Assembly (NCBI RefSeq): GCF_035594765.1
Contig: NC_085846.1
Location: 13,999,190 to 14,063,189, forward strand
Source: Anolis carolinensis
Lineage: Eukaryota
DNA length: 64,000 nt
Direction: 5' to 3'
Shown: in pieces, positions 7,958 to 51,936 of the stretch
Position numbering within the stretch: the first letter of the stretch is position 1
Layout of the letters: each line of letters starts with the position of its first letter
Notes under the pieces: generated by a model
What the model saw: only the letters and a program-made list of their open reading frames with translations
What the model was told of the DNA's origin: nothing
The model's database searches: none
Made by a program: the position numbers and the translations under genes

Positions 7958-8103
7958 NNNNNNNNNNNNNNNNNNNNNNNNNNNNNNNNNNNNNNNNNNN
8001 NNNNNNNNNNNNNNNNNNNNNNNNNNNNNNNNNNNNNNNNNNNNNNNNNNNNNNNNNNNNNNNNNNNNNNNNNNNNNNNNNNNNNNNNNNNNNNNNNNNN
8101 NNN
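7958..8103. other. Assembly gap (146 N)
   Basis: Run of N. Confidence 1.
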
Positions 8104-19164: not shown

Positions 19165-19509
19165 CTTTGGTAATACACAGTGCTTCACTCCCTTCTCAGC
19201 TTCCTTTCTGGAAGAATCCTTTCTTGGGAGGTGTTAGCTGGCCCTGATTGTTTCCTTTGTGGAATTTCCAATCTCCCTGCTTTCAGACTATTGGTCTTTA
19301 TTTACTGTCCTAGTTTTAGAGATTATATTGTTCTGCATTATTCTATCCCAGTAATTATTTCATATTAAAGTAGAATCTCACTTATCCAACATTCGCTTAT
19401 ACAATGTTCTGGATTATCCAACGCAGTCTGCCTTTTCATAATCAAGGTTTTTGTAGTCAGTGTTTTAAATTCATTGTGATATTTTAGTGTTAAATTTGTA
19501 AATACAGTA

Positions 19510-19832
19510 CAGTAGAGTCTCACTTATCCAACATAAAGGGGCTGGCAGAATGTTGGATAAGCGAATATGTTGGATAATAAGGAGGCATTAAGGAAAAGCC
19601 TATTAAACATCAAATTAGGTTATGATTTTACAAATGAAACACCAAAACATCATGTTAGACAACAAATTTGGCAGAAAAAATAGTTCAATACGCAGTAATG
19701 CTATGTAGTAATTACTGTATTTATGAATTTAGCACCAAAATATCACGATATATTGAAAACATTGACTCCAAAAATGTGTTGGATAATCCAGAATGTTGGA
19801 TAAGTTAGTGTTGGACATGTGAGACTCTACTG
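19510..19832. mobile_element. Tigger/pogo-like MITE (CAGTAGAGTCTC TIR) nested in an opposite-orientation copy (~19368-20030)
   Basis: TIRs and TA target duplication. Confidence 0.75.
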
Positions 19833-20746
19833 TAATTACTACATAGCATTACTGCGCATGGAACTACTTTTTCTGTCAAATTTGTTGTATAATATGATGT
19901 TTTGGTGCTTCATTTGTATAACAATTACCTAATTTGATGTTTAATCGGCTTTTCCTGAATCCCTTCTTATTATCCAACATATTCACTTATCCTGCTGGCC
20001 TGTTTATGTTGGATAAGTGAGACTGTACTGTATATTGATAATCTTATATTATCTGCTTAGAAATGGATTATATGAGGCCCCTTCTTCACAGCTGTATAAA
20101 ATGCACACTGAAGTGGATTATATGGTAGTGTGGAGTCAAGATAATCCAGTGCAAAGCAGATAATATAAGATTATAAATGGGTTATATAGCTGTGTGGAAG
20201 GGCCTTGAGTCTACACTGCCATATAATCCAGTGCAAATTAGATAATCTGTGGAAGAGGCCTAAGTGAGGCCTAAATCTGCCTGTCCCCTAGCTGAACCCT
20301 GGCTGTCCCTTGGCTGAGTTGGTTGCTAGGAGACCAAGTGGGCAGAGATTAGCCCTCTAAACTGGCAACAATTGGATAAAAACAATTATTGCTCTCCCTC
20401 TAATTAGGACTTTATTTTTCTTTTCTTTTTGTTGTATCAACCTAGAGGCGTGGATGATGGGTCGTGTTGTCAAATTTCGAGGTTGGGGGGGCCTGTAGTT
20501 TTGTTGTTTTGTGGGTTGCCGTGATGCCATCACTCATTTATATATATAGATTACATTTATTATTTTACTCTATTATTATTGTTACTTTTATATTTATTTT
20601 ACTTTATTTTTGTATTATGATTAATACATTTATTATTTCACTCTGATATTATTGTTACTGCGTTTATTATTTTACTCTATTTATTATTCCATGTATTATT
20701 TTCCTGTATTTATTATTATTATTACATTTATTATTTTACTCTATTA

Positions 20747-21069
20747 CAGTAGAGTCTCACATATACAAGCTAAATGGGCTGGCAGAACCTTGGATAAGCG
20801 ACTATTTTGGATAATAAGGAGGAATTAAGGAGAAGCCTATTAAACATCAAATTAGGTTATGATTTTACAAATTAAGCACCAAAACATCATGTTATACAAC
20901 AAATTTGACAGAAAAAGTAGTTCAATACGCAGTAATGTTATGTTATAATTACTGTATTTACAAATTTAGCACCAAAATATCATGATATATTGAAAACATT
21001 GACTACAAAAATGGCTTGGATAATCCAGAACCATGGATAAGCGAGTCTTGGATAAGTGAGACTCTACTG
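20747..21069. mobile_element. Tigger/pogo-like MITE
   Basis: TA^CAGTAGAGTCTCAC ... GAGACTCTACTG^TA. Confidence 0.8.
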
Positions 21070-22067
21070 TATTATTAAAAGGATACATAAGTACATTTAC
21101 ATTGAAGAAGATGAGAATAATGATTTAGTCAGAGTTGGACAGCCTTATCTTAAATTACAGTTTTATGTAAATATTCAGAAACATTTAACCTACTGATGCC
21201 TCAATTAATGTAAGTTTATTGGTATCTATTTTTATTTCTGAAATTTATCACTCTCGGCTTATACTTGAGTCAATTTTTTTTGTGGTAAAATTAGATGCTT
21301 CAGCTTATATTTGGGTCTGTTTATACTTGAGTATATACGGTACATACCTATATTCTTTATTTCCATTATTATATTTCAAGGGGTTGGGTCTCTGGACTTT
21401 GTCAACTCACGTTGCAAAAACAATCATTAAAATAAATATACACCTTTCCTGCATTTATAGTGGCTTAATATAGAATTGGAAGCCCTTGACTTTGACCTTT
21501 AGCATATCTCCAGGAAAACAGCAAACCGAATGGACTAACTGACTAGATACAATGCATCGAAGGAAAGGAAAATATAAGTGTTTGTTAAATCTTTGTTTTG
21601 ATCCCACAATTGGTTCTTTATTACCAGTCTCTCTCTTACCCTCCTCTACCCACTTTTCACCCTGCAAATACAAGGTCTGCATTTAATCATTACATGGGTG
21701 ACGATGATGACCAATTACTTTATAATTGCTTGTTTTATCACAGAGACTCAGACCAAGGGCTAAAGAGGAAGGGAAAGGGGGAAGGGGTTGGTTTCTTTTG
21801 TGGTAGCAAATTCCATGCCATGGATGGTGTCTCCAGGGAGCCTGATGGCACCTCAAGTACCTAAAGAACCCAGAAGGCCTCAGGAAGCTGTAATTGGGGC
21901 AGGTGGCAATAGCAGCCACATCCCAGTGAGAAATATGTGCTAATTGGGAAGTGACTAGTGATGCACTCAAGAGCAAAGGGTTACAAAGAAGGGCATGGAA
22001 GAAAGCGTGAAGGCAAAAACTACTGTCATTTGTGACAGTGGCAGGGAATGTGACCAGAAACCATAAT

Positions 22068-22360
22068 ACTATGTAACAAAATTTGGAAAAAATTCTGTTC
22101 CTGGTTTGAAAGTGTTATTTCTTGTTTAATTGTGCAGTACTTACTTTGAAAGTAGTTTCTATACTCCAGAAACTTCGTTTTGTGGCTGCTACAGACTCTG
22201 TTGAATTGGTTGAGACTAAATGAAATATCAAGTGAAAAACTATAACAAAATGTGCTGCAAGATGTCCTGCAAAAAGTTTTTGAAGTTTAATAAACTTTTT
22301 TATGTTTTTATGTTAGAACCAATTAGGAAATCACATTTATAACCCAGGAACAAAAATTAT
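22068..22360. mobile_element. DNA transposon fragment, possibly Chapaev-like
   Basis: ACTATGTAA start; homologous to ~14537-14590 and ~25118-25730; family assignment tentative. Confidence 0.45.
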
Positions 22361-23582
22361 GTTTTTGATAATGTAATTGAGGGTAGATTTGATCCATCAT
22401 CTTGAGAGGGAGGCTTTGTATTGAGTGTGTGGAAGCCCAAGAAAAAGCGGTTCTGAAAGCACTGTGATAGGAATTGTGTAAAGATAGCTTTAGGGCAGAA
22501 TCTGGAATAATAATAACAACAACAACAACAATAATAATACTTTATTCTTATATCCCACCCCATCTCCCCGAGGGGACTTGGGGCGGCTTACAAGGAGACC
22601 AAGCCCAACAGTGTAATAAAATATAACAGTAAAAACAAATCCAAACACAACAATAAATACATCCGAATAAAACATACAATAACAACAATTTAAAACATGT
22701 TCAGTGACCGGAGTGATTTATTTGATCCTTCAATCACTTTTTTGGATCATATCTGCCATAATCCCCAGTTGACCTTTGGCACTGAAGTTACTCTTTTGGA
22801 AAATCACACTTTTTTGGAGTCCAATAAGTAACTTTCCAAACCCTGGTTAGAATTGCCAACATTTTGTTCTTGGTTTGTTCATTTGCTGTCAATGACTGAA
22901 TTGGCATAGAGAAATGCATTCAAGGGAAGCTTCCTCCACCCTTATTTCCATTCCGAGGCCACAGTCTGAACAAACATGGTGCAGAAACCTGAGATCTGAG
23001 TGTAGTTCGTGTCAGGATGGGAAATCTGCTAGGAAACTGTGCATGCTGCCTTGAGTTCTATAAGGGATGAAAAATGGTTTATAATAAATACACAGGAAAA
23101 CTTTGATCCAATTGGAGAGGGAATTGGGCAGACTGGCAACTGGGCAGAAAGACCAGGACAGGGAGGAGTAAGGCAGCAATGGAGCGCAAATTGTTAGAAA
23201 TATATACAGCTCATTTCTTCTCAGAAATAAGCAACACTTAGCTCAATGGGACTTACTGACTGGTAAAAGCTTACAATGTTTTGCCCCTAATGGAGTGATG
23301 GAGGTCGCATGAGTCTTCAACTCTCAGGCTAGATGTACACTGCCACATAATAGAATTCAAATAATATAATCTGGATTCAGAAATGATTATATGGCAGTTT
23401 AGACAGGGCCTCAGATTCAGCTTTCAGCTTTCCTCATTATTCTCTGTGCTGGCTATGGCTGCTGGGAGTTGCAGTTCAAGAACACATCTATAGTTCTCTC
23501 TATGGCAAAGACCCTGGAGGGATACAATAGCCTTGCCATGGCATCTAGCATTTGTTGGATAAACTGGGGTTCTGTGGTGGTA

Positions 23583-23925
23583 CAGTAGAGTCTCACTTAT
23601 CCAACATGAAACGGGCCGGCAGAACGTTGGATAAGCGAAAATGTTGGATAATAAGGAGAGATTAAGGAAAACCCTATTAAACATCAGATTACATTATGTT
23701 TTTACAAATTAAACACCCAAACATCATGTTTTACAACAAATCAAGAGAAAAAGCAGTTCAATACACGGTATCGTCATGTAGTAATTACTGTATTTACGAA
23801 TTTAGCACCAAAACATCACAATGTATTGAAAACATTGACAACAAAAACACTGGCTACTAAAAGGCAGACTGCGTTGGATAATACAGAACGTTGGATAAAT
23901 GAAAGTTGGATCAGTGAGACTCTAT
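23583..23925. mobile_element. Tigger/pogo-like MITE
   Basis: Same TIR family. Confidence 0.75.
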
Positions 23926-24223
23926 GTAGTTCTGATTATCTCATTTTCTCAAATTTGTCGATAATGTCCTTCTTATGTACTTTGCATATGTTTATCTGTC
24001 TGTGCATTATAACTGTTCAACATAAGAAAAGCCAGATAGACTAGGAGGCTGGAGGATTCTGAGAGTTGTAGTCACAAATGTCCAAGGTCACACAACTCAA
24101 AGACAATGCTAGCTCGGCTCTGTTTTTAAAGGTTGTGTTTTCATGCCTCAAATTGTGTTTCATTTTGTTACATTTTGCTGCCTATTTGTTTTGTTGTTGG
24201 TCATTGATTGATATAGACATAGG

Positions 24224-24549
24224 TAAGGTAAAGGTTTTCCCCTGACGTTAAGTCCAGTCGTGACCGACTCTGGGGGCTGGTGCTCATCTCCATTTCTAAG
24301 CCGAAGAGCCGGCGTTGTCCGTAGACACCTCCAAGGTCATGTGGCCGGCATGACTGCATGGAGTGCCGTTACCTTCCTGCCGGAGCGGTACCTATTGATC
24401 TACTCACATTGGCATGTTTTCGAACTGCTAGGTTGGCAGGAGCAGGGGCTAACAGCGTGCTTTCATTCCGCTCCCGGGATTTGAACCTGGCACCTTTTGG
24501 TCCGCAAGTTCAGCAGCTCAGCGCTTTAACGCACTGTGCCACCAGGGGC
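24224..24549 (-). mobile_element. Sauria SINE
   Basis: Full-length-like, AAGGTAAAGGT tail on plus strand. Confidence 0.85.
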
Positions 24550-25204
24550 ACATAGATATAAATATATGCTGAATCTGATGGGAGTTGCAGTCCAACACAT
24601 CTGGAGGGCAACAAGTTGGAGAAGTGGAATATGGATGCCAACGTGGCAGATTCCCTTTATCTGATTCAGCCTCATCTTTACAAGAGCCAGCAACTAAAGA
24701 TACCAATAAATTCCAGACAGGATTTAACATCAGTCTTGGACAAGTTTGACTGCAGCGGATGTGATTTTCCTTAGCAGGGGTGGGAGTGGGGAGAGAACAA
24801 GAGAAAGCAAGGGGAGGGAGGGGCTTCTAAGCATCTTCAGCATCCTTTATCCTGTGCTGGGTACCAATCTCTGAACAGCCTGCCTTGGGGAAAGAGCTGG
24901 AAGAGGCAGATGAAAGAGTTTGTTGGAGGCAATAACATTACCAAGTATTGACAGCTTAACTTGGAAACCACCTTCTTAAACCTTCTTCTTCTAAGAACAG
25001 GTATGTGGGATTGGGAGCAGCTTTGGGAATGATATATCTTTAACTTGTTGCAATGCTGTCCTTTTTTTTATCTTAAGGGCTATTTTTGTGATGCGATCCC
25101 ATGTAAAATAAAGATTACACTATGTAAAAAAATTGATTTTTTTCCTGTCCCTGGTTTAAGAGTGTTATTTCCTGTTTAATTGTGCAGTACTTACTTTGAA
25201 AGTA

Positions 25205-25512
25205 CAGTAGAGTCTCGCTTATCCAACGTTCTGGATTATCCAACGCATTTTTGTAGTCAATGTTTTCAATATATCGTGATATTTTGGTGCTAAATTCGTA
25301 AATACAGTAATTACTACATTGCATTACTGCATATTAAACTACTTTTTCTGTCAAATTTGTTGTATAACATGATGTTTTGGTGCTTAATTTGTAAAATCAT
25401 AAATTAATTTGATGTTTAATAGGCTTTTCCTTAATGCCTCCTTATTATCCAACATATTCGCTTATCCAACGTTCTGCCGGCCCATTTATGTTGGATAAGT
25501 GAGACTCTACTG
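25205..25512. mobile_element. Tigger/pogo-like MITE inserted in the Chapaev-like element
   Basis: TIRs, TA TSD; host sequence resumes after it. Confidence 0.8.
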
Positions 25513-25784
25513 TAGTTGTTACAGTCCAGAAACTTTGTTTTTCTGCCTGCCACAAATTATGTTGAATTTGTTGAGACTGTATGAGATATTCATTGGAAAA
25601 CTAAAGCAAAATGTGCTGCAAGATGTCCTATATGCAGAAACAGAGTTTTGGCAGTTTAATACACCTTTTCCATGTTTTTATGATAGAACCAACTGAAATT
25701 CGTAACCCAGGAACAAAAATCGTGCATAGCGTTATGGGAAAATTCAATCTGTCAAGAATAAGGAATGAGGAGGATTAGATAGAC

Positions 25785-25918
25785 CAGGCATGGGCAAACT
25801 CTGCCCCTCCAGGTGTTTTGGACTTCAACTCCCACAATTCCTAACAGCCTACCGGCTGTTAGGAATTGTGGAAGTTGAAGTCCAAAACACCTGGAGGGGC
25901 GAAGTTTGCCCATGCCTG
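25785..25918. mobile_element. Palindromic hAT-like MITE (short form)
   Basis: CAGGCATGGGCAAACT ... AGTTTGCCCATGCCTG. Confidence 0.85.
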
Positions 25919-26303
25919 AGACAAACATTTGTTTTTATCTGGAAGTGTGGCTATGCTTTCTGAATTGCCACTCCCAGAATTCCTCAGACACCATGTGTGC
26001 TTCTGAGACTATTTGATGTGGAGGACTGGCAACTATCTTTTTAAATGTACCAGGGACTGGCGTTGTCCTTGTTCCTATTTGAACTACAGTTGTTACTTTC
26101 CTAGAAATCCATCAGGACAACACCAGTCCAGGAGCAACTGCTCCAAGTAGCACCATACAAAAAAAAATCCTGATTTTTTTCACTCCAAAAAATTAATTTC
26201 TTCCCCCAATCTATTTTTTTAAAAAACAGAGAGACAACCTGAGTAAAACCAAGTGACAACCACTCTGTACGGCAACCTGAATTGAACCCTCTGTGCCCCT
26301 TGA

Positions 26304-26519
<216 letters not shown>

Positions 26520-27049
26520 TAGGATGACCAAGACCACCAATTCTCCATACTCTAGATCTCTCTCCCTCTAGATCTCCTTCCTCTGAAGTGCCCAGCAGTG
26601 TCTACAAGTAGATCCAGAGCTCCCTGCTTAAGAATACTCCAGCCTTAGGAGCCACTGCTGGGCAAGCATGCAGGCTCACACCTCATCTTAGAACTAGTTG
26701 TTTATATAGGCTACTATGTAATTATTAATTAGCTATGGATTGTTAATAGGTATTTGTACTAGTTACTTTCTTTGTTATTTTCTAAATAACTTTCTAACTG
26801 CAACATGTTACATTGTATCTTTATAGTGAGAGTAAATGTTGCTGTTTATGGCATGAGAGGTAGTTAGACTGAGGTAGAGATTCTGGGGATTTTAGTCCAA
26901 AACACAGTTCTGAATGGCTGAATCTGTGGATTCAGAATCCATGAATACAGAGGGCTGGCTGTGTAAGCCAGCCCTTCTGTGCCCACCCATCGCCGAAAGG
27001 AGCACACTGTCAGATTTCAACATCTCAGAAGTAATATCACATCTATTAT

Positions 27050-27317
27050 GGAGCCCCCGGTGGCCTAGGGGATAAAAGCCTTGTGACTTGAAGGTTGGGT
27101 TGCTGACCTGAAGGCTGCCAGGTTCGAATCCCACCCGGGGAGAGCGTGGATGAGCTCCCTCTATCAGCTCCAGCTCCATGCGGGGACATGAGAGAAGCCT
27201 CCCATAAGGATGGTAAAACATCAAAACATCTGGGCATCCCCTAGGCAACGTCCTTGCAGACGGCCAATTCTCTCACTCCAGAAGCAACTCTGGTTGCTCC
27301 TGACACGAAAAAAAAAA
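27050..27317 (+). mobile_element. Anolis SINE2-like SINE in intron
   Basis: 12-bp TSD ATCACATCTATT (27036-27047, 27317-27328), polyA tail. Confidence 0.85.
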
Positions 27318-27530
27318 TCACATCTATTGCTATTTTGGGCAATTTTCAGTCTTTTCTGAGTTTCCCCCGTGGGAAAAGCTGCATTTGAATCTACTTTTGG
27401 GTGATTTGAAAGTGAAAAATAAAAAAGTTGCATAAAAACCAGTACTACCCCCAAGCCTAGAAGCTTTCAGGGTCACACTTTGGTGTACCAATAGTTACAT
27501 GCAGCCTTTTAGCCACCCTTTACTGGTATA

Positions 27531-27859
27531 CAGTAGAGTCTTGCTTCTCCAACCTTCGCTTATCCAACGTTCTGGATTATCCAATGTAGTCTGCCTCCCA
27601 CCCGGATCCACAGCTGTTGCATTTCGCCCCTCCCAGTGAGCGCCCGGTGCATGGAGAGGCCCGGTGCACGTTGCTGCCTAGAGAAACAAACAGCACATTG
27701 CTGCCTAGAAAAAACATGATGTTTTGGTGCTTAATTTGTAAAATCATAATGTAATTTGACGTTTAATAGGCTTTTACTTAATCCCTCCTTATTATTCAAC
27801 ATTTTTGCTTTTCCAATGTTCTGCCAGTTGGTTTATGTTGGATAAGCGAGACTCTACTG
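27531..27859. mobile_element. Tigger/pogo-like MITE variant in intron
   Basis: TIRs and TA flanks. Confidence 0.7.
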
Positions 27860-27940
27860 TAGTTTGAAAAGTCATACACTCTGATCCACGTTCAGAGAAC
27901 CTCCCCAGATCTTCTCTGTCCTCCTTCCTTTCTTCCTCAG

Positions 27941-28427: not shown

Positions 28428-28881
28428 CTTCCCAAAAGAGTTGCCAGCTTGGGATTTTGAAGGCCCTTGGGTTCCTAGGCCAAAACCTGAGACCTAAAGA
28501 CAAGCCCCTAGTGATATTATTAAACATTGTCCATTAAGTACCAACAAACATCGCTGATGAGACCTTGTCATTCAAACATGCAGAGAAAGAAAGGGAGAGA
28601 ACAAATGTGCAAACACCTACACAACATTAAAAGCTCAACTTTAGTCAGTTGGCAAAAACTTGATGGCACAAAATGTTTGGACCAGGAGAGTAAGGATGGG
28701 GCCACCATGGGAAGGAGTTCTAGCCTGGAAGCAGCCACAAAAGAGGCCCTACTTCTTATTTTCCCACCAAATGAACCTTAGAAGGCTTTGGACCATGGTG
28801 ATGATCTCTCCAGAAGATGGAATGAGGGTCATAGGGACCTTATGATGTTGTTGAATGACAGCTTCCATTCAGCTTCTGGGA

Positions 28882-29015
28882 CAGGCATGGGCAAACTTCG
28901 GTCCTCCAGGTGTTTTGGACTTCAACTCCCACAATTCCTAACAGCCGGAAGGCTGTTAGGAATTGTGGGAGTTGAAGTCCAAAACACCTGGAGGACCGAA
29001 GTTTGCCCATGCCTG
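28882..29015. mobile_element. Perfectly palindromic MITE in probable 3' UTR
   Basis: 65-bp perfect arms, GGAA loop; AATAAA at ~29087 downstream. Confidence 0.85.
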
Positions 29016-30039
29016 TACTAGAAGCTGTAATTCTGGAGGGTGTCATATTTCTACTCCTGGTTTAATTACTGGCAATAAGTGCTTTAAATAAAAAAGGATG
29101 CTTATTTTGGCCTACTTTTTGCCTTGCACTCCAGCCAAATCCCTACGAAATTGAATTTTTCCCTTTCCTGTTGTATTATCTTTATTTATTGGTTCCTAGG
29201 GGGAAATGCAGAACTAACTTTGGTGAAGTAGTGGAAAGCAAGGTTCACAACATTAGAGTGCTCCTGCAACCGTTGTTTCCCAGACTTCCTTGTTCCTTGT
29301 TATTTTAGCTGTATTTCTTACAGCAGCTGAAGGGAAAGGGAGTTAATTTTCCCAGTGAAATTACAGTATTGTCAGCTATCCATGCTGCAATACAATTTGG
29401 ATGTGACATGTGAAATTGAAAGTGCAATTGAAATCTATTAACTTTACAAAAGACCTGCACCTGGTAGACACAAACCTAGCAAGAATTGGCTTATTGGGAT
29501 GGATATCACTGACTGTGTTTTTGGACTCTCCTTTCAAGTAATAGTTATGGGGAATTTCATGGTGAATGCTTGCATTTCAAAATTTACCACTATACTGCTT
29601 TCTAGTGCTGTTTCTTATGCATTCTTCCACATTTAACTCCCTTTCCCCTATCCCTGGTTTAGCTTCCCTATTCTTTTTCCATTTCTTCCTTCCTTGTGAT
29701 GTGTTCAGTGGTTTCTACAAGAATTAAACACACATACCGCTATCAATGGCTTTGATTTAACTGTAGAATGAATTCCTTCCTTGTCTCCGATATATATATA
29801 TGTTGCTGTTCAAGTGATTGATTTTTATTGACAATATTATTTAAATGTAAATTATATTATTGTCAGAGAAGAGCAGTAATATATTCTTGCCCCCCACTTT
29901 ATCTGAGAATGTGTACTCTTGATGTGACTATTAAATGGTTGTTTCTTGCTGCCACCTAGTGAACTGTGCCATTATTATCCAGCTACGGTATTAACAATAT
30001 TCCCTGATTCTTGTGTAGAGAAATAAATGCCTTGTAGGT

Positions 30040-39307: not shown

Positions 39308-40415
39308 TGGGTTGCTGTGAGTTTTCTGGGCTGTATGGCCATGTTCTAGAAGCATTCTCTCCTGACGTTTTGACCACATCTATGGCAGGCATCCTCGAGT
39401 TGTGAGGTCTGTTGGAAACTAGGAAAGTGAGGTTTATATAAGTATCAAAGGTACAGGGTGGGTGAAAGAACTCTTGTCTGTTGGAGGCAAGTGTGGATGT
39501 TGCAGTTGGCCAGCTTGATTAGCATTGAATGGCCCTGCAGCTTCCTGCCTGGGGGAATCCTTTGTTGGGAGATGTTAACTGGCTCTGATTGTTTCCTGGT
39601 TTGATTGACGTACTTCAGTGCTTTGTAATCATAGCAGCTGTAGTTTGGGGAGGCACCAGCACTAGCAGAGAAGGCTTAAGACCTTAAAACTACAAGTTGC
39701 ACATTCAATTGCATTAAGCAATGGCAGTTTAAAGTGTCAAACTGCATTAATTCTACAGTGTAGGCACACCCCCAGAGTTTATTTATAAGGGTATATTTAT
39801 ATAGTTGGAGTCTAGTATGCTTCATTTAATCCTCTCAACCAGCCTCCATTGTCTTACCTTCCAGGCTCTTGCTTGGAACCGGTTTTTGGCTTTTTTAATG
39901 CTATTTTCTAAGTTCAGCCTGGTTTTTTTCTTCCTCATTCCTCACAAACTATTCCTCAATCTCTTCAAGACTGCTTTTAAGAGGAAACTGAAAAATGAAC
40001 AAAATTTGGCTGCCAGTATTTTTTAAAAAAACTCTAAAATCAGGACAGCAAATAAAGAACAACATCCAAAAATGGGAATTCCAAATAGGAAACAATCAGG
40101 GCCAGCTAACACCTTCCAAAAAAGTTTTAAGTTACTACATGGCCCCCCAGGCAGGAAGCAGCCAGGTTTTGAAGCTGCGATGCCATTCAATGTTAATCAA
40201 GCCGGCCAAACTGCAACATTCGCACTTGCCTCAAACAAAGAGTTCTTTCCCCCAACCTTCACTTTCCAGATATATTCCACAGATATATCAACCCCAATTG
40301 CCTAGTTTCAAACAGACCTCACAACCTCTGAGGATGCCTGCCATAGATGTGGGTGAAACATCAGCAGAGAATGCTGCTGGAACATGGCCATACAGCCTAG
40401 AAAGCTCACAGCAAT
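39308..40415. mobile_element. Two PLE terminal fragments in inverted orientation (39308-39598 minus, ~39994-40415 plus)
   Basis: Mutual reverse-complement homology; hammerhead-like motifs at ~39357 (degenerate) and 40318-40369. Confidence 0.75.
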
Positions 40416-41904
40416 CCACTCATTTTTGTTTAAATGCACCTATTCCCTGGAAAGTAAAGAAACTTGCAAAGATAAATGCGACTTTTATTCTAGCAACAGT
40501 CTTCAGCATCTTAGAAACCAAGACATATCTGTTGCTGTGTGCCTTCAAGTTATTTCCGAATATATGGCGATCCTAATATGACCTATCAAAGGATTTTCCA
40601 GGCAAGGTTTGTTCAGAAAGGATTTTTCTTTGCCTTCCCCTGAGACTGAGAGAGTGTGATTTGCTTAAAGTCACCCAATAGGTTTCTATGGGAAGTTGGG
40701 ATTTGAACCCCGCTCTCTGTTCCTAATCCAGCAATCAGACCGGTACACCATGATGCCCTTTAGTCAGCTAACACACTTGTGTAAAATCTATTATAATATA
40801 TATTACTATTATTTATTGTATAAAATCTATACCTTGATACCATGATGCAATTATTAGTCTTTAGCACTTGTTTTAAGATACTACATGGACCTTTCTTTTC
40901 TTTTCTTCTTTACTGCAGCAGACTAACACAGCTTCCATCTTTTAATTTGTGTTCCTAACAAAGTGCAAGTAGCAAATAAATGAGAAAGTAAATTTCTTTA
41001 AAACATATCAGTTGTGTGTTAATGGAAACTTTTTAACCACCATCACAAATTTCTGCTGCAAGAATCATATACTAAAGCAGGTCTGTAGCCCCATTAAAGA
41101 AAACATCATCGGTTACCTAGTTTTCCCTAAACAGCAGTAATGAAAGCCAATTGAAATACTGCAAAGTATTAGCAAAGTAAATTAATTTTGAGCACTACCT
41201 ATAGTACAAATAGGCCTCAGTTAGTGTAATGTTATTTAAGGATACAGAAACATTTGGAGTCCAGCAGATAGTTCTCCCTATGCATAGGATATAGAACAAC
41301 TTGTATCATGTTGCAATGTGCCTTCAAGTTAATTGTTTTATTCAATCTAACATATGACTTTCTTAGCAAGATTTATTCAGAGATTTGCTATTACCTACCT
41401 CTAAGATTAAATCTGGAAAATTAATGTAGTTTGACAACACTTGAATGCTATGCTATGAAATTATGACCACTGTAGTTTTACAAGGTCTTCTCTGCCAAAA
41501 GAGTGCTAGCACTTCACTAAACTAGAACTCCGAGGATTGTATGGCCTTGATCCATGTTAAAATGTTTTTAAACTGCCTTAATTCCTCAGTGCAGATGTAA
41601 ACTAAGTCTGACTCCAGCTTGTTGCAAGCTCCAGACAAGGTGTAGGGAGCATGTAACATACTAGGTCTCACGCTGTGATATTGCTTTAAACAAAAAAAAG
41701 TCGAAAGGAGAGTGGTTGCCATGAATATATAAAAAATATTTTCTAGTCTATAAATAAAGCCAAACAGTTATAGGGCGACGCTTATTGAGAAGCAGAAAGG
41801 GCGCCAAAATGCGAGAGAGGCCTGACGCTTCTTGATTGGTCAGTTTAAAATTCCATTCAACTCGTTCATTGGACAGGCTTCCAAGCGGCGAGAACACTGG
41901 ATGC

Positions 41905-45527: not shown

Positions 45528-45725
45528 TACACCCAGAAGGCGATATTTCTGTGACTTGCCCTGGCTGGTTTCATTATCTTTGAGGCAGATGCAGCAGGAA
45601 AAGGCGATTAAGTCCCCATGCAACTGTATCACTTGTATTGTTTTAGTGGGGCATAAAGATAAAACTCCTTCCAGAAGAGGAACCTTTGCTTGGTTCAGAA
45701 TCTACTTGTGAGAAATGTATTCAAT

Positions 45726-45960
45726 GTGTTGTCGAAGGCTTTCATGGCCACAATCGCTACCTCAGGTTGCTGTGAGCTTTCCGGGCCGTATGGCCATATT
45801 CCAGAAGCATTCTCTCCTGACGTTTCACCCACATCTATGGCAGGCATCCTCAGAGGTTGTGAGGTCACACCTCTGGATGCCACCCATAGATGTGTCCGAA
45901 ACGTCAGGAGAGAATGTTTCTGGGACATGGCCATGCAGCTCAGAAAACTCACAGCAAACC
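45726..45960 (-). mobile_element. Short inverted-repeat PLE insertion
   Basis: Tail + terminal repeat + inverted decayed copy; 12-bp TSD AATG(T/A)ATTCAAT. Confidence 0.8.
45812..45863 (-). ncRNA. Minimal hammerhead ribozyme motif, core intact
   Basis: CCT-CTGAGGA-T-GCCTGC(catagat)GTGGGT-GAAACGTC-AGG. Confidence 0.65.
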
Positions 45961-46199
45961 AATGAATTCAATATTTTTTTTTCCACTCAAGGTTCCTGTA
46001 AACAGGGCTATGCCTTTAAATACTTCTGATTCCAGTATGCCCCTTGTGTTCTTTACCGTAAACTTCTAAATTCAAATTTCCTGGGTAGTATCTTTGCCAG
46101 AGAATGGAAGCAGCAGATGTCGTCAGGGAAGGCTGTTGCTAGGAGAGATAATCCCTCAGACCAGAGAACAAAGGCAGACCGTGGGCGGGGGGAGCACCA

Positions 46200-46367: not shown

Positions 46368-46823
<456 letters not shown>

Positions 46824-46852
46824 AGACACCCCCGCTTTCACAACGACCCAAA

Positions 46853-46868
46853 GGCTCTTTTCAGAGCC
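46853..46868 (+). terminator. Histone 3' stem-loop
   Basis: GGCTCTTTTCAGAGCC-ACCCA. Confidence 0.95.
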
Positions 46869-47196
46869 ACCCAACTTTTCATTTTGAAAGGAGCTCGTTT
46901 TTGCTGCCATTTTTATCTACATCAAAGTTGGGCCCTTCGGGTGTTTTGTACTTTTAACTCCCACCATTCCTAACAGCCTCAGGTTTAAGGGGCTGAGGGG
47001 GGAAAGGAAAGGTCTTGAGGCTGTTAGGAATGATGGGGGTTAAAGTACAAAACACCCAAAGGGCCCAACTTTGCTTATGAGCCTGCAGGCCAGTTAAGGT
47101 TTTGTAAGGCACTCTTGAGTGCCCTCGTCAGAAAAGTAACAATTATCTAAAAATATATACTCTAACAAATAACCATGGTATGTATGTGTGTGTGTG

Positions 47197-47200
<4 letters not shown>

Positions 47201-47261
<61 letters not shown>
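47201..47261. repeat. (TA)n microsatellite
   Basis: About 30 TA units. Confidence 0.95.
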
Positions 47262-47263
<2 letters not shown>

Positions 47264-48032
47264 GATTTTGGTTCAGAACTGGCTTGCCTTTGTGCCTTTC
47301 TGAGGCTGAGTGTGACTCGGCCCTTCCACACAGCCATATAACCCACAAAATAAAGGCAGAAAATCCCACAATATCTGTTTTTTGGACTGGGTAATCTTGA
47401 GTCCACACTGCCATATATCCCAGTTCAAAGCAGATAATGTGGAATTTTATTCAGCTGTGTGGAAGGGGCCTCAGACTGGAATTTAGGTTTCCCAGAGGTA
47501 TCTAAATATCTACATGTACAAGTGTGTGTGTTTTTTAAAAAAAAAAATCTTAAGACTTGAAGGCTTTCATGGGCAGCATCACTGATTTACTGTGCTGTGA
47601 GTTTTCCTGGACCTTCCACAGATATATAAACCCACACTTGCATAGTTTTCCAACAGACCACACAACCTCTGGGGATGCCTGCCATAGATGGGCAAAACGT
47701 CAGGAGAGGATGCTTCTGGAACATGGCCAGACAGCCTAGAAAACTCACAGTAATCCTTAAGGTTCCTATGGTTTTCACTTACAGTAGTCTCACTTATCCA
47801 ACATAAACGGGCCAGCAGAATGTTGGGATAAGCGAATATGTTGTATAATAAGGAGGCATTAAGGAAAAGCCTATTAAACATCAAATTAGGCTATGATTTT
47901 ACAAATTAAACACCAAAACATGTTATACAACACATTTGACAGAAAAAGTAGTTCAATGTGCAGTAATGCTATGTAGGAATTACAGGGTTGTTGTATGTCT
48001 TTCGGGCTGTGTGGCCATGTTCCAGAAGCATT

Positions 48033-48084
48033 CTCTCCTGACGTTTCGCCCACATCTATGGCAGGCATCCTCAGAGGTTGTGAG
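48033..48084 (-). ncRNA. Minimal hammerhead ribozyme motif, intact
   Basis: Exact reverse complement of 48091-48142. Confidence 0.75.
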
Positions 48085-48090
48085 GTATAC

Positions 48091-48142
48091 CTCACAACCT
48101 CTGAGGATGCCTGCCATAGATGTGGGCGAAACGTCAGGAGAG
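48091..48142 (+). ncRNA. Minimal hammerhead ribozyme motif, intact (predicted cleavage 3' of C48135)
   Basis: Stem I CCT/AGG, core CTGAGGA 48101-48107, stem II GCCTGC/GTGGGC, GAAA 48128-48131, palindromic ACGT in place of stem III, GTC triplet. Confidence 0.75.
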
Positions 48143-48590
48143 AATGCTTCTGGAACATGGCCACACAGCCCGAAAGACATACAACAACCCTGTGATTCTG
48201 GCCATGAAAGCCTTCGACAACACATATGTAGGAATTACTGTATTTATGAATATAGCACCAAAATATCACGATATATTGAAAACATTGACTACAAAAATGT
48301 CTTGGATAATCCAGAACGTTTGGATAAGCGAGGGTTGGATAAGTGAGACTACTGTATTTATATACTGCCTTTCGCACCCTTGCGGGGGGGGGGGGACTCG
48401 AGGCGGTTTATATCTCAACCATGGCAGCCTTTTGAGTGGAGAAGAGCTGCACTGAAAAGGGGCGTGGAAACTCCCTGCTTTGGGGGTTTTTCAAAGAGGC
48501 TGTATGGGCATCTGCTGGGAGAGCTTTGATGGTGCCTCCCTGCATGGCCCTTGGAGGGTGTCTCAGCTCTTTCGGGTGGAGCGTGTGGGT

Positions 48591-48606
48591 GGCTCTGAAA
48601 AGAGCC
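48591..48606 (-). terminator. Histone 3' stem-loop
   Basis: GGCTCTTTTCAGAGCC on minus strand. Confidence 0.95.
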
Positions 48607-48635
48607 GTTGGGGTGGCGGCGGGGTGTGTGTGTGC

Positions 48636-49295
48636 TCACTTTCTCTTGGGCGCCGCCTTGGTCTTCTTGGCCTTGGGGCTCTTGGCCGGCCTGGGCTTGG
48701 CTTTGGGGCTCTTGGCCTTCGGCTTGGGCTTGCTGGGGGCCTTGGTCTTCTTGGGGCTCTTGGCGGGCTTCTTGGCGGCGGCCTTGGGCTTCCTGGGCGG
48801 CGCGGCCTTGGTCTTCTTGGGGCTCTTCTTCCTGGGCGCGGCGGCGGCGGCCTTGGGCTTCTTGGGGCTCTTGCGGGCGCCCCCTGCCGGCCTCTTGGCG
48901 GCCGCGCTGGGCCTCTTGGCGGGCGCCTTCCTCTTGGCCGCCGCCTTGCTGTCCCCGGGAGGCTTCTTGTTGAGCTTGAAGGAGCCCGAGGCGCCGGTGC
49001 CCTTGGTCTGGACCAGCGTGCCCTTGGCCACGAGACTCTTGAGGCCCAGCTTGAGGCGGCTGTTGTTCCGCTCCACGTCGTAGCCCGCGGCCGAGAGCGC
49101 CTTCTTGAGCGCGGCCAGCGAGACCCCGCTGCGCTCCTTGGACGCCGCCACCGCCTCGGTCAGCAGCTCCGTCACGCTCGGGCCCGAGGAGGCCTTGCGC
49201 GGCTTCTTGGCCTTCGGCGCCGCCTTCTTGGCCTTCTTCGCTGCGGGGGCCGCAGGAGCCGCCTCCGCCGGAGCCTCGGGAGCAGTCTCGGACAT
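48636..49295 (-). CDS. H1: Histone H1, 219 aa, near-identical to 35393 copy
   Basis: Differs by 2 aa (PARKSK vs PPRKPK). Confidence 0.97.
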
Positions 49296-50244: not shown

Positions 50245-51430
50245 GGGTTGCTGTGTTTTCTGGGATGTCTAGCTATGTTCCAGAAACATTCTCTCCAGAC
50301 GTTTCGCCCACATCTATGGCAGGCATCCTCAGAGGTTTGTGAGGTCTGTTGGAAACCAGGCAAGTGGGGTTTATACATCTGGAATGTCTAGGGCGGGAGA
50401 AAGAAGTCTTGTCTGTTTGAGGCAAGTCTGAATGTTGCAATTGGCCTCCTTGATTAGCATTTATTAGCCTTACAGCTTCAAAGCCTGACTACTTCCTGCT
50501 AGGGGGAATCCTTTGTTGGGAGGTGTTAGGTGATTGTTTCATGTCTAGAATTCCCGTTTTCAGAGTGTTGTTTTGAATTTACTGCCCTGATTCTGCAGTT
50601 TTTTAAATACTAGCATCCAGAATTTATTCATTTTCATGGCTTCCTCCTTTCTGTTGAAATTGTCCTCACGCTTGTGGATTTTAATTGCTTCTCTGTGTCG
50701 TCTGACGTAGTTGTGAGAGTCCAACATTTCCGTGTTCTCAAATAATATGTTGTGTCTAGGTTGGTTCATCAAGTGCTCTGCTAAGGCTGAATTAGTCTGC
50801 AGTGCCACACAGCCCTATATCCCAGAATATCAAGGCAGAAAATCCCACAATTTGTGAGGGTTATCTGAGTCCACACTCAGATAATGTGAGATTTTTTGCC
50901 TTGATATTCTGGGATATAGGGCTGTGTGAGTGCCTTTCATGTTCCTTGATATTTTTAGAGGGGAGGCAATGTTGTGTTTGGTGGTCCCTATTTAGACTTG
51001 TCCACAGCTGCATGGGATACGGTAGACTCCTGCAGAGGTGAGAGGATCATTTGTTGGAATTTCTTAGTGGGTCTGTAGATAGTTTGTAGGTTGTGTTTCT
51101 TCATCAGTTTCCCTATGCGGTCAGTGATTCCCTTTATGTATAGTTTCCTCCAGGCAGTAAGCAACTAGACCTTGAAGCTGAAAAACTATTCAGTTCTAAT
51201 CAAGGTGGCCAATTGAAACATTTGCCTCCAACAGACAAGAGTTCTTTCTCTCACCCTGGACATTATTCCACAGATATATAAACACTTGCCTAGTTTCCAA
51301 CAGACCTCACAACCTCTGAGAATGCCTGCCATAGATGTGGGCGAAACGTCAGGAGAGAATGCTTCTGGCCATACAGCCTGGAAAACTCACAGCAACCCAG
51401 TGATCAGTGATTCCGGCCATGAAAGCATTT
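50245..51430 (-). mobile_element. Penelope-like element remnant with GIY-YIG relic and inverted terminal repeat (51146-51430 plus); MITE inserted at ~50801-50935
   Basis: Minus frames YIKGITDRIGKLMKKH, GVYRIPCSCGQV*IG, SALAEH..REAIKIH..NFNR; hammerhead motifs at 50291-50343 (-) and 51306-51357 (+, core mutated). Confidence 0.85.
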
Positions 51431-51936
51431 ATCTATTTTCTGAACAAAATAGAATATAAATACTGAGGAGGAAATAACTTTAGAAAGGCTAAGAAAGTCC
51501 TGCTATTCTTTATGCAGCAACCAGAACCAGATACCTTTTTGAATGGATCTAAAAATGGCGGCAGTTTTTACTTTACCTCTGTAAGGGTGGATTCAGCACC
51601 TACACTGTAGAATTAGTGATTTGACAGTACTTTTAACTTCCATTGCTCTAGGCTTTGTGTTCAGAATATTTGTAATTTTAGGTCTTTAGCCTTAGCTGCT
51701 TTGGGTGTGTTTTTGGGTAATAATAAAGCAAACTGGTGAATCCCCAAGCAACAACTCGTGATTCCATACCATTAAGGTGGTGACACACTACATTATTTCC
51801 AGTGTAGATTCACCCAAGAAAATTTACAGATGTAGCATTAATTAAATGAACTCAAATTTTTAAAAGGAACACGAGTAATAAAACTGCATTGATACAAACG
51901 GCACGGACAACAGCTCTTTCTAAGGAAAAGGTGGGT

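Follow-up and report, generated by a model that had tools for sequence, protein, structure and literature searches.

The histone spacer and its palindrome

Two histone genes converge on the locus described here, which belongs to a 64-kb stretch of Anolis carolinensis DNA that we analysed as a whole and refer to as the window. The H3 gene lies on the plus strand (46413-46893, with the CDS at 46413-46823 and the stem-loop at 46848-46893) and the H1 gene on the minus strand (48567-49295, with the CDS at 48636-49295 and the stem-loop at 48567-48611). Between them is a perfect palindrome of 212 bp, whose two arms (47982-48087 and 48088-48193) are exact reverse complements of 106 nt each, joined without a spacer. 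The first mismatch is met at 47981/48194, and a repeat finder stretches the arms to 111 nt at 99%. The initial annotation had reported both the perfect palindrome and its convergent setting, ~1.1 kb past the H3 stem-loop and ~0.4 kb past the H1 stem-loop, and these descriptions agree with our coordinates. The palindrome is by far the longest spacer-free one of the window. The next-longest structure is a perfect inverted repeat at 28881-29016, with 66-nt arms and a 4-nt spacer, which belongs to an unrelated hairpin repeat family with at least 8 copies in the window, one of them (46923-47074) just past the H3 stem-loop. The H3-H1 spacer also contains a (TG)n(TA)n microsatellite at 47179-47261.

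The palindrome is followed on its right side by a tail of 31 nt (48194-48224, plus strand) and is enclosed by two copies of a 14-bp TSD, TATGTAGGAATTAC, at 47970-47983 and 48225-48238, so that the insert between the copies measures 241 bp; the last 2 nt of the left copy also fit the palindrome. The TSD contains AATT and the target is AT-rich. The insertion splits a host element at 47780-48356, which we assign to the MITEs of the Tc1/mariner-pogo type because it is flanked by TA on both sides and has perfect TIRs of 23 bp (CAGTAGTCTCACTTATCCAAC...). Taking out the insert together with one 14-mer copy joins the flanks into one continuous element of 333 bp, which aligns colinearly, at 88-92%, with three paralogues (19508-19838, 25214-25514 and 20744-21073). 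All three run through the 14-mer, which is present once in each, as in an empty site. The TSD together with these colinear empty-site paralogues thus identifies a real insertion. The host MITE family has at least 5 further copies in the window, and at least six copies of this MITE are clustered at 19366-27861 (~8 kb). A SINE-like repeat that adjoins the split MITE contains a run of 12 G at 48385-48396.

Identity of the insert

Poseidon_Ac, a PLE of the Penelope/Poseidon clade of Anolis carolinensis, is said to go back to work by Arkhipova in 2006. PAc, as the Poseidon element of this species is called, was characterised by Frangieh et al. (2024), who gave both the Repbase consensus and an RNA template (PMC11167929). 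When numbered from the A of the ATG of the PAc ORF (48107), positions 48088-48224 of the window correspond to nt -19 to +118 of the element. Arm and tail are identical to the published Repbase consensus at 135 of 137 positions, and both differences are in the tail, at 48197 and 48199 (TCTGG vs CCCGG). The arms are 100% identical to the RNA template tested in vitro (PMC11167929); these identities to consensus and template were judged block by block, by eye, without an aligner. The direct arm (48088-48193, plus strand) covers nt -19 to +87 and is identical throughout to consensus and template, and the one-sided tail covers nt +88 to +118, ending in the AC-rich RT initiation site. The inverted arm (47984-48087, minus strand) is tail-less and covers nt -19 to +85, or +87 when the 2 nt in common with the TSD are included. 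Translation from 48107 gives 39 codons, 38 of which match the published PAc N-terminus.

The insert holds only these first 39 codons of the ORF. It starts downstream of the TATA box and is promoter-less, and it is not an autonomous PLE, having neither an ORF for RT and GIY-YIG endonuclease (EN) nor a pLTR promoter. We consider it very probable that the palindrome is a young, dead-on-arrival 241-bp insertion of the Penelope-like retrotransposon Poseidon_Ac. This agrees with the initial annotation, which had read the locus as a young PLE insertion on the basis of its tail and TSD; the 31-nt tail, the 14-bp TSD and the single 14-mer of the paralogues all support that reading. Given the two differences in the tail, the source cannot have been an exact consensus copy. 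The absence of any difference over 106 bp sets a loose upper bound on the age of the insertion, and arm-to-arm gene conversion could preserve identity.

A phmmer search with the 39-aa N-terminus against 1.84 billion representative proteins did not recover the full RT/EN protein. It returned gene models with an exonised Poseidon ORF start (MPAIDVGETSGENASG...), among them caspase, prenyltransferase, homeobox and IFI6-like models; the matched public gene models (P0001, P0002, P0004, P0005 and P0011) include lizard ones. The 378 aa of the P0001 model consist of this unit repeated in tandem every 54 aa, an artefact that implies tandem arrays of ~162 nt somewhere. Since phmmer gave only exonised copies and one artefact, the link to the RT/EN ORF rests on the published consensus. 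At the locus itself, the palindrome opens long ORFs on both strands, of 163 aa (47886-48377, minus) and 136 aa (47936-48346, plus), which hold the same Poseidon N-terminal peptide and are liable to mislead gene prediction.

It is common in PLE insertions for an inverted, 5'-truncated copy to adjoin the 5' end and for just one end to bear a tail of 30-40 bp (Craig et al. 2021, PMC8557442). The inverted arm and the one-sided tail found here follow this generic layout, and the initial annotation was right to regard inverted termini as a typical PLE insertion product. The insertion differs from the generic layout in being an extreme minimal case, in which both copies end at the same element position and thereby form a spacer-free palindrome. 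In PAc, the tail (~nt 85-119, ~34 nt) lies between two RT start sites, the dominant of which is an AC-rich stem-loop at nt 111-118, and the protein prefers AT-rich targets with an ATT motif (PMC11167929). Compared with these published start sites, the right end of the insertion is at +118 and the left arm ends at +85/87, so that the outer end of the inverted arm coincides with the inner site. The insertion therefore has nt -19 to +118, the hammerhead, the tail span, the RT start sites and the AT-rich target in common with PAc, and differs from the full element in being a 241-bp fragment, arranged head-to-head rather than as a tandem pLTR-ORF-pLTR, with no RT/EN coding capacity and no promoter. 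Element, arrangement and ribozyme motif are all known already; what is added here is that both ends map to published RT start sites and the centre to a predicted transcription start.

The hammerhead motifs

For minimal hammerheads (min-HHRs), we used a descriptor of our own built on published criteria, which demands both catalytic boxes, an optional nucleotide after A9, a G10.1-C11.1 pair, a helix II of at least 4 bp, a complementary 15.2-16.2 pair, U16.1, H17 and a helix I of at least 3 bp. In the 64 kb it matched the two arms and one old copy (4522, minus strand), and it had 0 matches in 200 shuffles. The plus-strand match is a minimal type-I motif at 48098-48138, with C3 at 48101, C17 at 48135 and a predicted cut between 48135 and 48136; A9, the following U and G10.1 form the ATG at 48107-48109, which is the start codon. 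The mirror motif on the minus strand lies at 48037-48077, with C3 at 48074 and C17 at 48040. The motif is made up of helix I (CCU/AGG), CUGAGGA, the extra U at 48108, a helix II of 6 bp, GAAA, ACGU and C17. Helix II includes two G-U pairs, and its G48109-C48127 pair is G10.1-C11.1. Both catalytic boxes are present (CUGAGGA, which fits CUGANGA, and GAAA) and H17 is C, not G. The emergent min-HHR features listed by Cervera & de la Pena, namely the nucleotide between 9 and 10.1, the G10.1-C11.1 pair, the palindromic 15.2-16.2 and the long helix II, are all found as well. Helix I has only 3 contiguous pairs, compared with a criterion of 4-5 bp, with a CUC/GAG pairing possible beyond an internal loop. 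In the MFE fold of the monomer, UGAGG of the core pairs with CCUCA on the 5' side instead.

The Rfam covariance models for hammerheads (types I, II, III, HH9 and HH10) gave no match at the gathering score in the window, and none at E<=10 with either 1 kb or a single arm. Such a result is to be expected of a monomer that lacks helix III. Matches to Rfam miRNA-precursor models were sub-threshold and simply reflect the hairpin, and a miRNA reading was rejected. The hammerhead search that the initial annotation had proposed thus had a divided outcome, in that our descriptor finds both arms and the Rfam models find neither. The descriptor bears out, at the level of sequence, the earlier claim of a minimal PLE hammerhead whose helix III is reduced to the palindromic ACGU.

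The same annotation had also spoken of an intact ribozyme on each strand. The motifs are placed as it stated, and there is one on each strand because the element's own published motif was duplicated by inversion. To judge from the published work, however, "intact ribozyme" overstates their function. The identical PAc RNA cleaves only when PAc protein is added; either C3G or G8C abolishes this cleavage, and the double mutant restores it (PMC11167929). The ORF of PAc begins at stem II, with C3 and G8 ahead of the ATG and the cut 26 nt past the start codon, a layout that the motif at this locus shares, and anole RNA-seq showed no cleaved hammerhead ends (PMC11167929). Single min-HHRs are inactive and dimers weak (Cervera & de la Pena 2014, PMC4209133), and a transcript of this locus contains one sense and one antisense hammerhead and therefore no intramolecular sense dimer. 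Dual min-HHR motifs on opposite strands, 100-700 bp apart, have already been described (Cervera & de la Pena 2014, PMC4209133); unlike these, the two motifs of the Poseidon_Ac palindrome are perfectly complementary and 0 bp apart at their 5' ends. Nor is the insert a metazoan retrozyme, in which direct repeats of the same polarity each hold a hammerhead and permit a circular RNA to be excised; its two hammerheads are of opposite polarity.

Other copies of the family in the window

A BLAST search with arm and tail against the window revealed at least 12 copies of the family, at 80-94% identity. Most of them extend 200-360 nt upstream through the conserved TATA-box region. A search for longer copies within the window found none beyond ~360 nt upstream, which indicates that the window contains no RT/EN coding region of the family. 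The 3' ends of the copies fall into two classes, at query position 102-104 (tail-less) or 127-137 (tailed), and all window copies end near +83 to +85 or +109 to +118. The old copies have lost the hammerhead core, as at 47657-47757, where the box reads CUGGGGA and G12 is mutated to A.

An older head-to-head insertion of 240 bp with the same architecture lies at 45726-45965, ~450 bp upstream of the H3 start codon, and has a TSD of ~11 bp (ATGwATTCAAT). Its tailed arm (45725-45865, minus strand) meets a plus-strand arm (45865-45960) that ends near +85. The arms have diverged and the centre is short of a few bases; it lies within ~5 nt of the same element position. In a third, also older, head-to-head pair (47559-47757), the junction is asymmetric: an inverted tail piece (47559 to ~47612) is joined to a direct copy of ~-50 to +85 with a mutated hammerhead core, and the outer ends lie at both RT start sites. 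Two further pairs of family copies, at 39309-40419 and 50245-51440, have their 5' ends facing each other across several hundred bases, and no convincing TSD was found at either. Duplication of the histone repeat unit may have made these two pairs paralogous.

Origin of the palindrome

The position of the centre can be compared with the promoter of the element. The arms begin at -19; as the central AT is self-complementary, -20 may equally be taken as their start. In the pLTR consensus, the TATA box, TATATATT, begins 31 nt upstream of the A in CCATACC; this A is position -20, CCATACC fits the initiator consensus YYANWYY, and the TATA box is kept in older copies. From these motifs, we infer that the centre of the palindrome (-20/-19) is the predicted +1 and hence the 5' end of the PAc mRNA. 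A defined 5' end is supported by the independent insertion at 45726-45965, in which the centre and the outer ends match.

PAc protein is predicted to be a dimer, and in vitro it cuts both strands of the target and extends them (PMC11167929). We propose a sequence of steps, each of which we rate as somewhat more probable than an even call. The PAc mRNA would start at ~-20, where the TATA box and Inr of the pLTR predict the +1, and PAc protein would nick both target strands 14 bp apart. RT would then be primed at two internal sites, at +118 on the bottom strand and at ~+85 on the top strand, and both cDNAs would run off the RNA 5' end after 105-137 nt. Their identical 3' ends (...GGTAT) would join via the self-complementary AT, each being completed on the other. 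Priming at ~+85 on the top strand may be aided by a microhomology of 8 nt: GGAATTAC at the left TSD agrees at 7 of 8 nt with the reverse complement of element nt +85 to +92, and at the +85 site 8 positions of this target 3' end can be paired to the RNA, two of them as wobble pairs. The microhomology at the left junction would also fit ordinary 5'-junction repair. The two-strand priming model reproduces the GAGGT-AT-ACCTC centre, the one-sided tail and the 14-bp TSD. We infer the head-to-head joining step, and dual-strand priming is known from in vitro work only.

The 5' inversions of LINE-1 arise by twin priming, in which both target strands prime cDNA and give rise to an inverted segment. The proposed mechanism resembles twin priming in these respects. 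It differs in that the LINE-1 cDNAs cover different parts of the RNA and give an inversion rather than a palindrome, whereas the Poseidon_Ac cDNAs would cover the same template segment and begin at internal start sites specified by the element. We regard it as an evenly balanced proposition that the insertions of ~240 bp (47984-48224 and 45726-45965) are the in vivo signature of symmetric two-strand TPRT by a dimeric PAc complex.

A palindrome without spacer, with its tail on one side and a TSD, would also result if a single cDNA, primed at +118, read to the RNA 5' end, turned back and used its own strand as template for ~105 nt before being joined to the second target end, and self-priming by reverse transcriptase is well established. 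But such snap-back predicts arbitrary stops, whereas the short arm ends at +85/87, exactly at the inner published RT start, and the same holds for the insertions of 45865 and 47559. PAc is moreover reported to extend both strands (PMC11167929), and we find this origin unlikely. Folding back from the internal CCUCA/UGAGG hairpin was rejected, as it would leave a spacer of 7 nt. The unit of ~240 bp might instead be a non-autonomous mobile family, with a palindromic master that PAc mobilises in trans; two insertions built alike (240-241 bp) and no more than 2.5 kb apart would fit this, as would the tail variant TCTGG, which departs from the autonomous consensus. This explanation is more doubtful still, given that the arms are 100% identical to the autonomous element, that the unit lacks a TATA box and hence a promoter of its own, and that a perfect hairpin RNA would be a poor RT template. 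Both ends of the insertion also lie on RT start sites, as expected of products made anew each time. Two-strand priming accounts for short arms that end at an RT start better than snap-back or a palindromic master does.

Spacer-free perfect palindromes can also come from chimeric long reads, and assemblies are known to have difficulty with PLE structures (Craig et al. 2021, PMC8557442). An assembly fold-back is nevertheless scarcely credible here: the insert has an exact 14-bp TSD and divides a single MITE between its two flanks, the tail is asymmetric, the older and diverged insertion at 45726-45965 has the same architecture, and there is no assembly gap nearby, the only N run of the window being at 7958-8103. 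A functional reading would have read-through transcripts from the histone genes form dsRNA across the palindrome, which would gate the ribozyme or feed ADAR/Dicer and yield, for example, small RNAs against Poseidon. The initial annotation had argued that read-through from either gene yields the same RNA, which is correct, since by symmetry a transcript of either strand contains the same 212 nt. It had further proposed that a 106-bp dsRNA locks the ribozyme. The arms would indeed pair, the 281-nt RNA across the palindrome folding into a full hairpin at -245 kcal/mol (z = -33), but pairing is no evidence of a regulatory lock: such an energy results from any perfect palindrome and is therefore no sign of selection. 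In favour of read-through dsRNA are this thermodynamically overwhelming hairpin and the stretch from the H1 stem-loop to the palindrome, which has no AATAAA/ATTAAA hexamer; inverted-repeat transposon copies are, in addition, known sources of small RNAs in other animals. Against it, three such hexamers lie between the H3 stem-loop and the palindrome, and histone 3' processing is normally efficient. The ribozyme also needs PAc protein and probably a second sense copy (PMC11167929, PMC4209133). We therefore hold this reading to be very improbable. With at least 12 copies of the family in the window, the position of the palindrome between H3 and H1 looks incidental, and no function is indicated.

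Implications

For histone biology the insertion is of little import: it adds another neutral transposon fragment to an intergenic spacer. Perfect palindromes of this kind are in general prone to cruciform extrusion and fragility, and the 212-bp palindrome may be a potential fragile or cruciform-forming site as well as a trap for assemblers and gene predictors. As regards PLEs, an unmutated copy whose outer ends lie on RT starts mapped in vitro and whose centre lies on the predicted transcription start is a clean natural example in support of two-strand priming. If true, two-strand priming would account for the inverted repeats and one-sided tails of PLEs, which have long been a puzzle, and also for the abundance of their abortive mini-copies.
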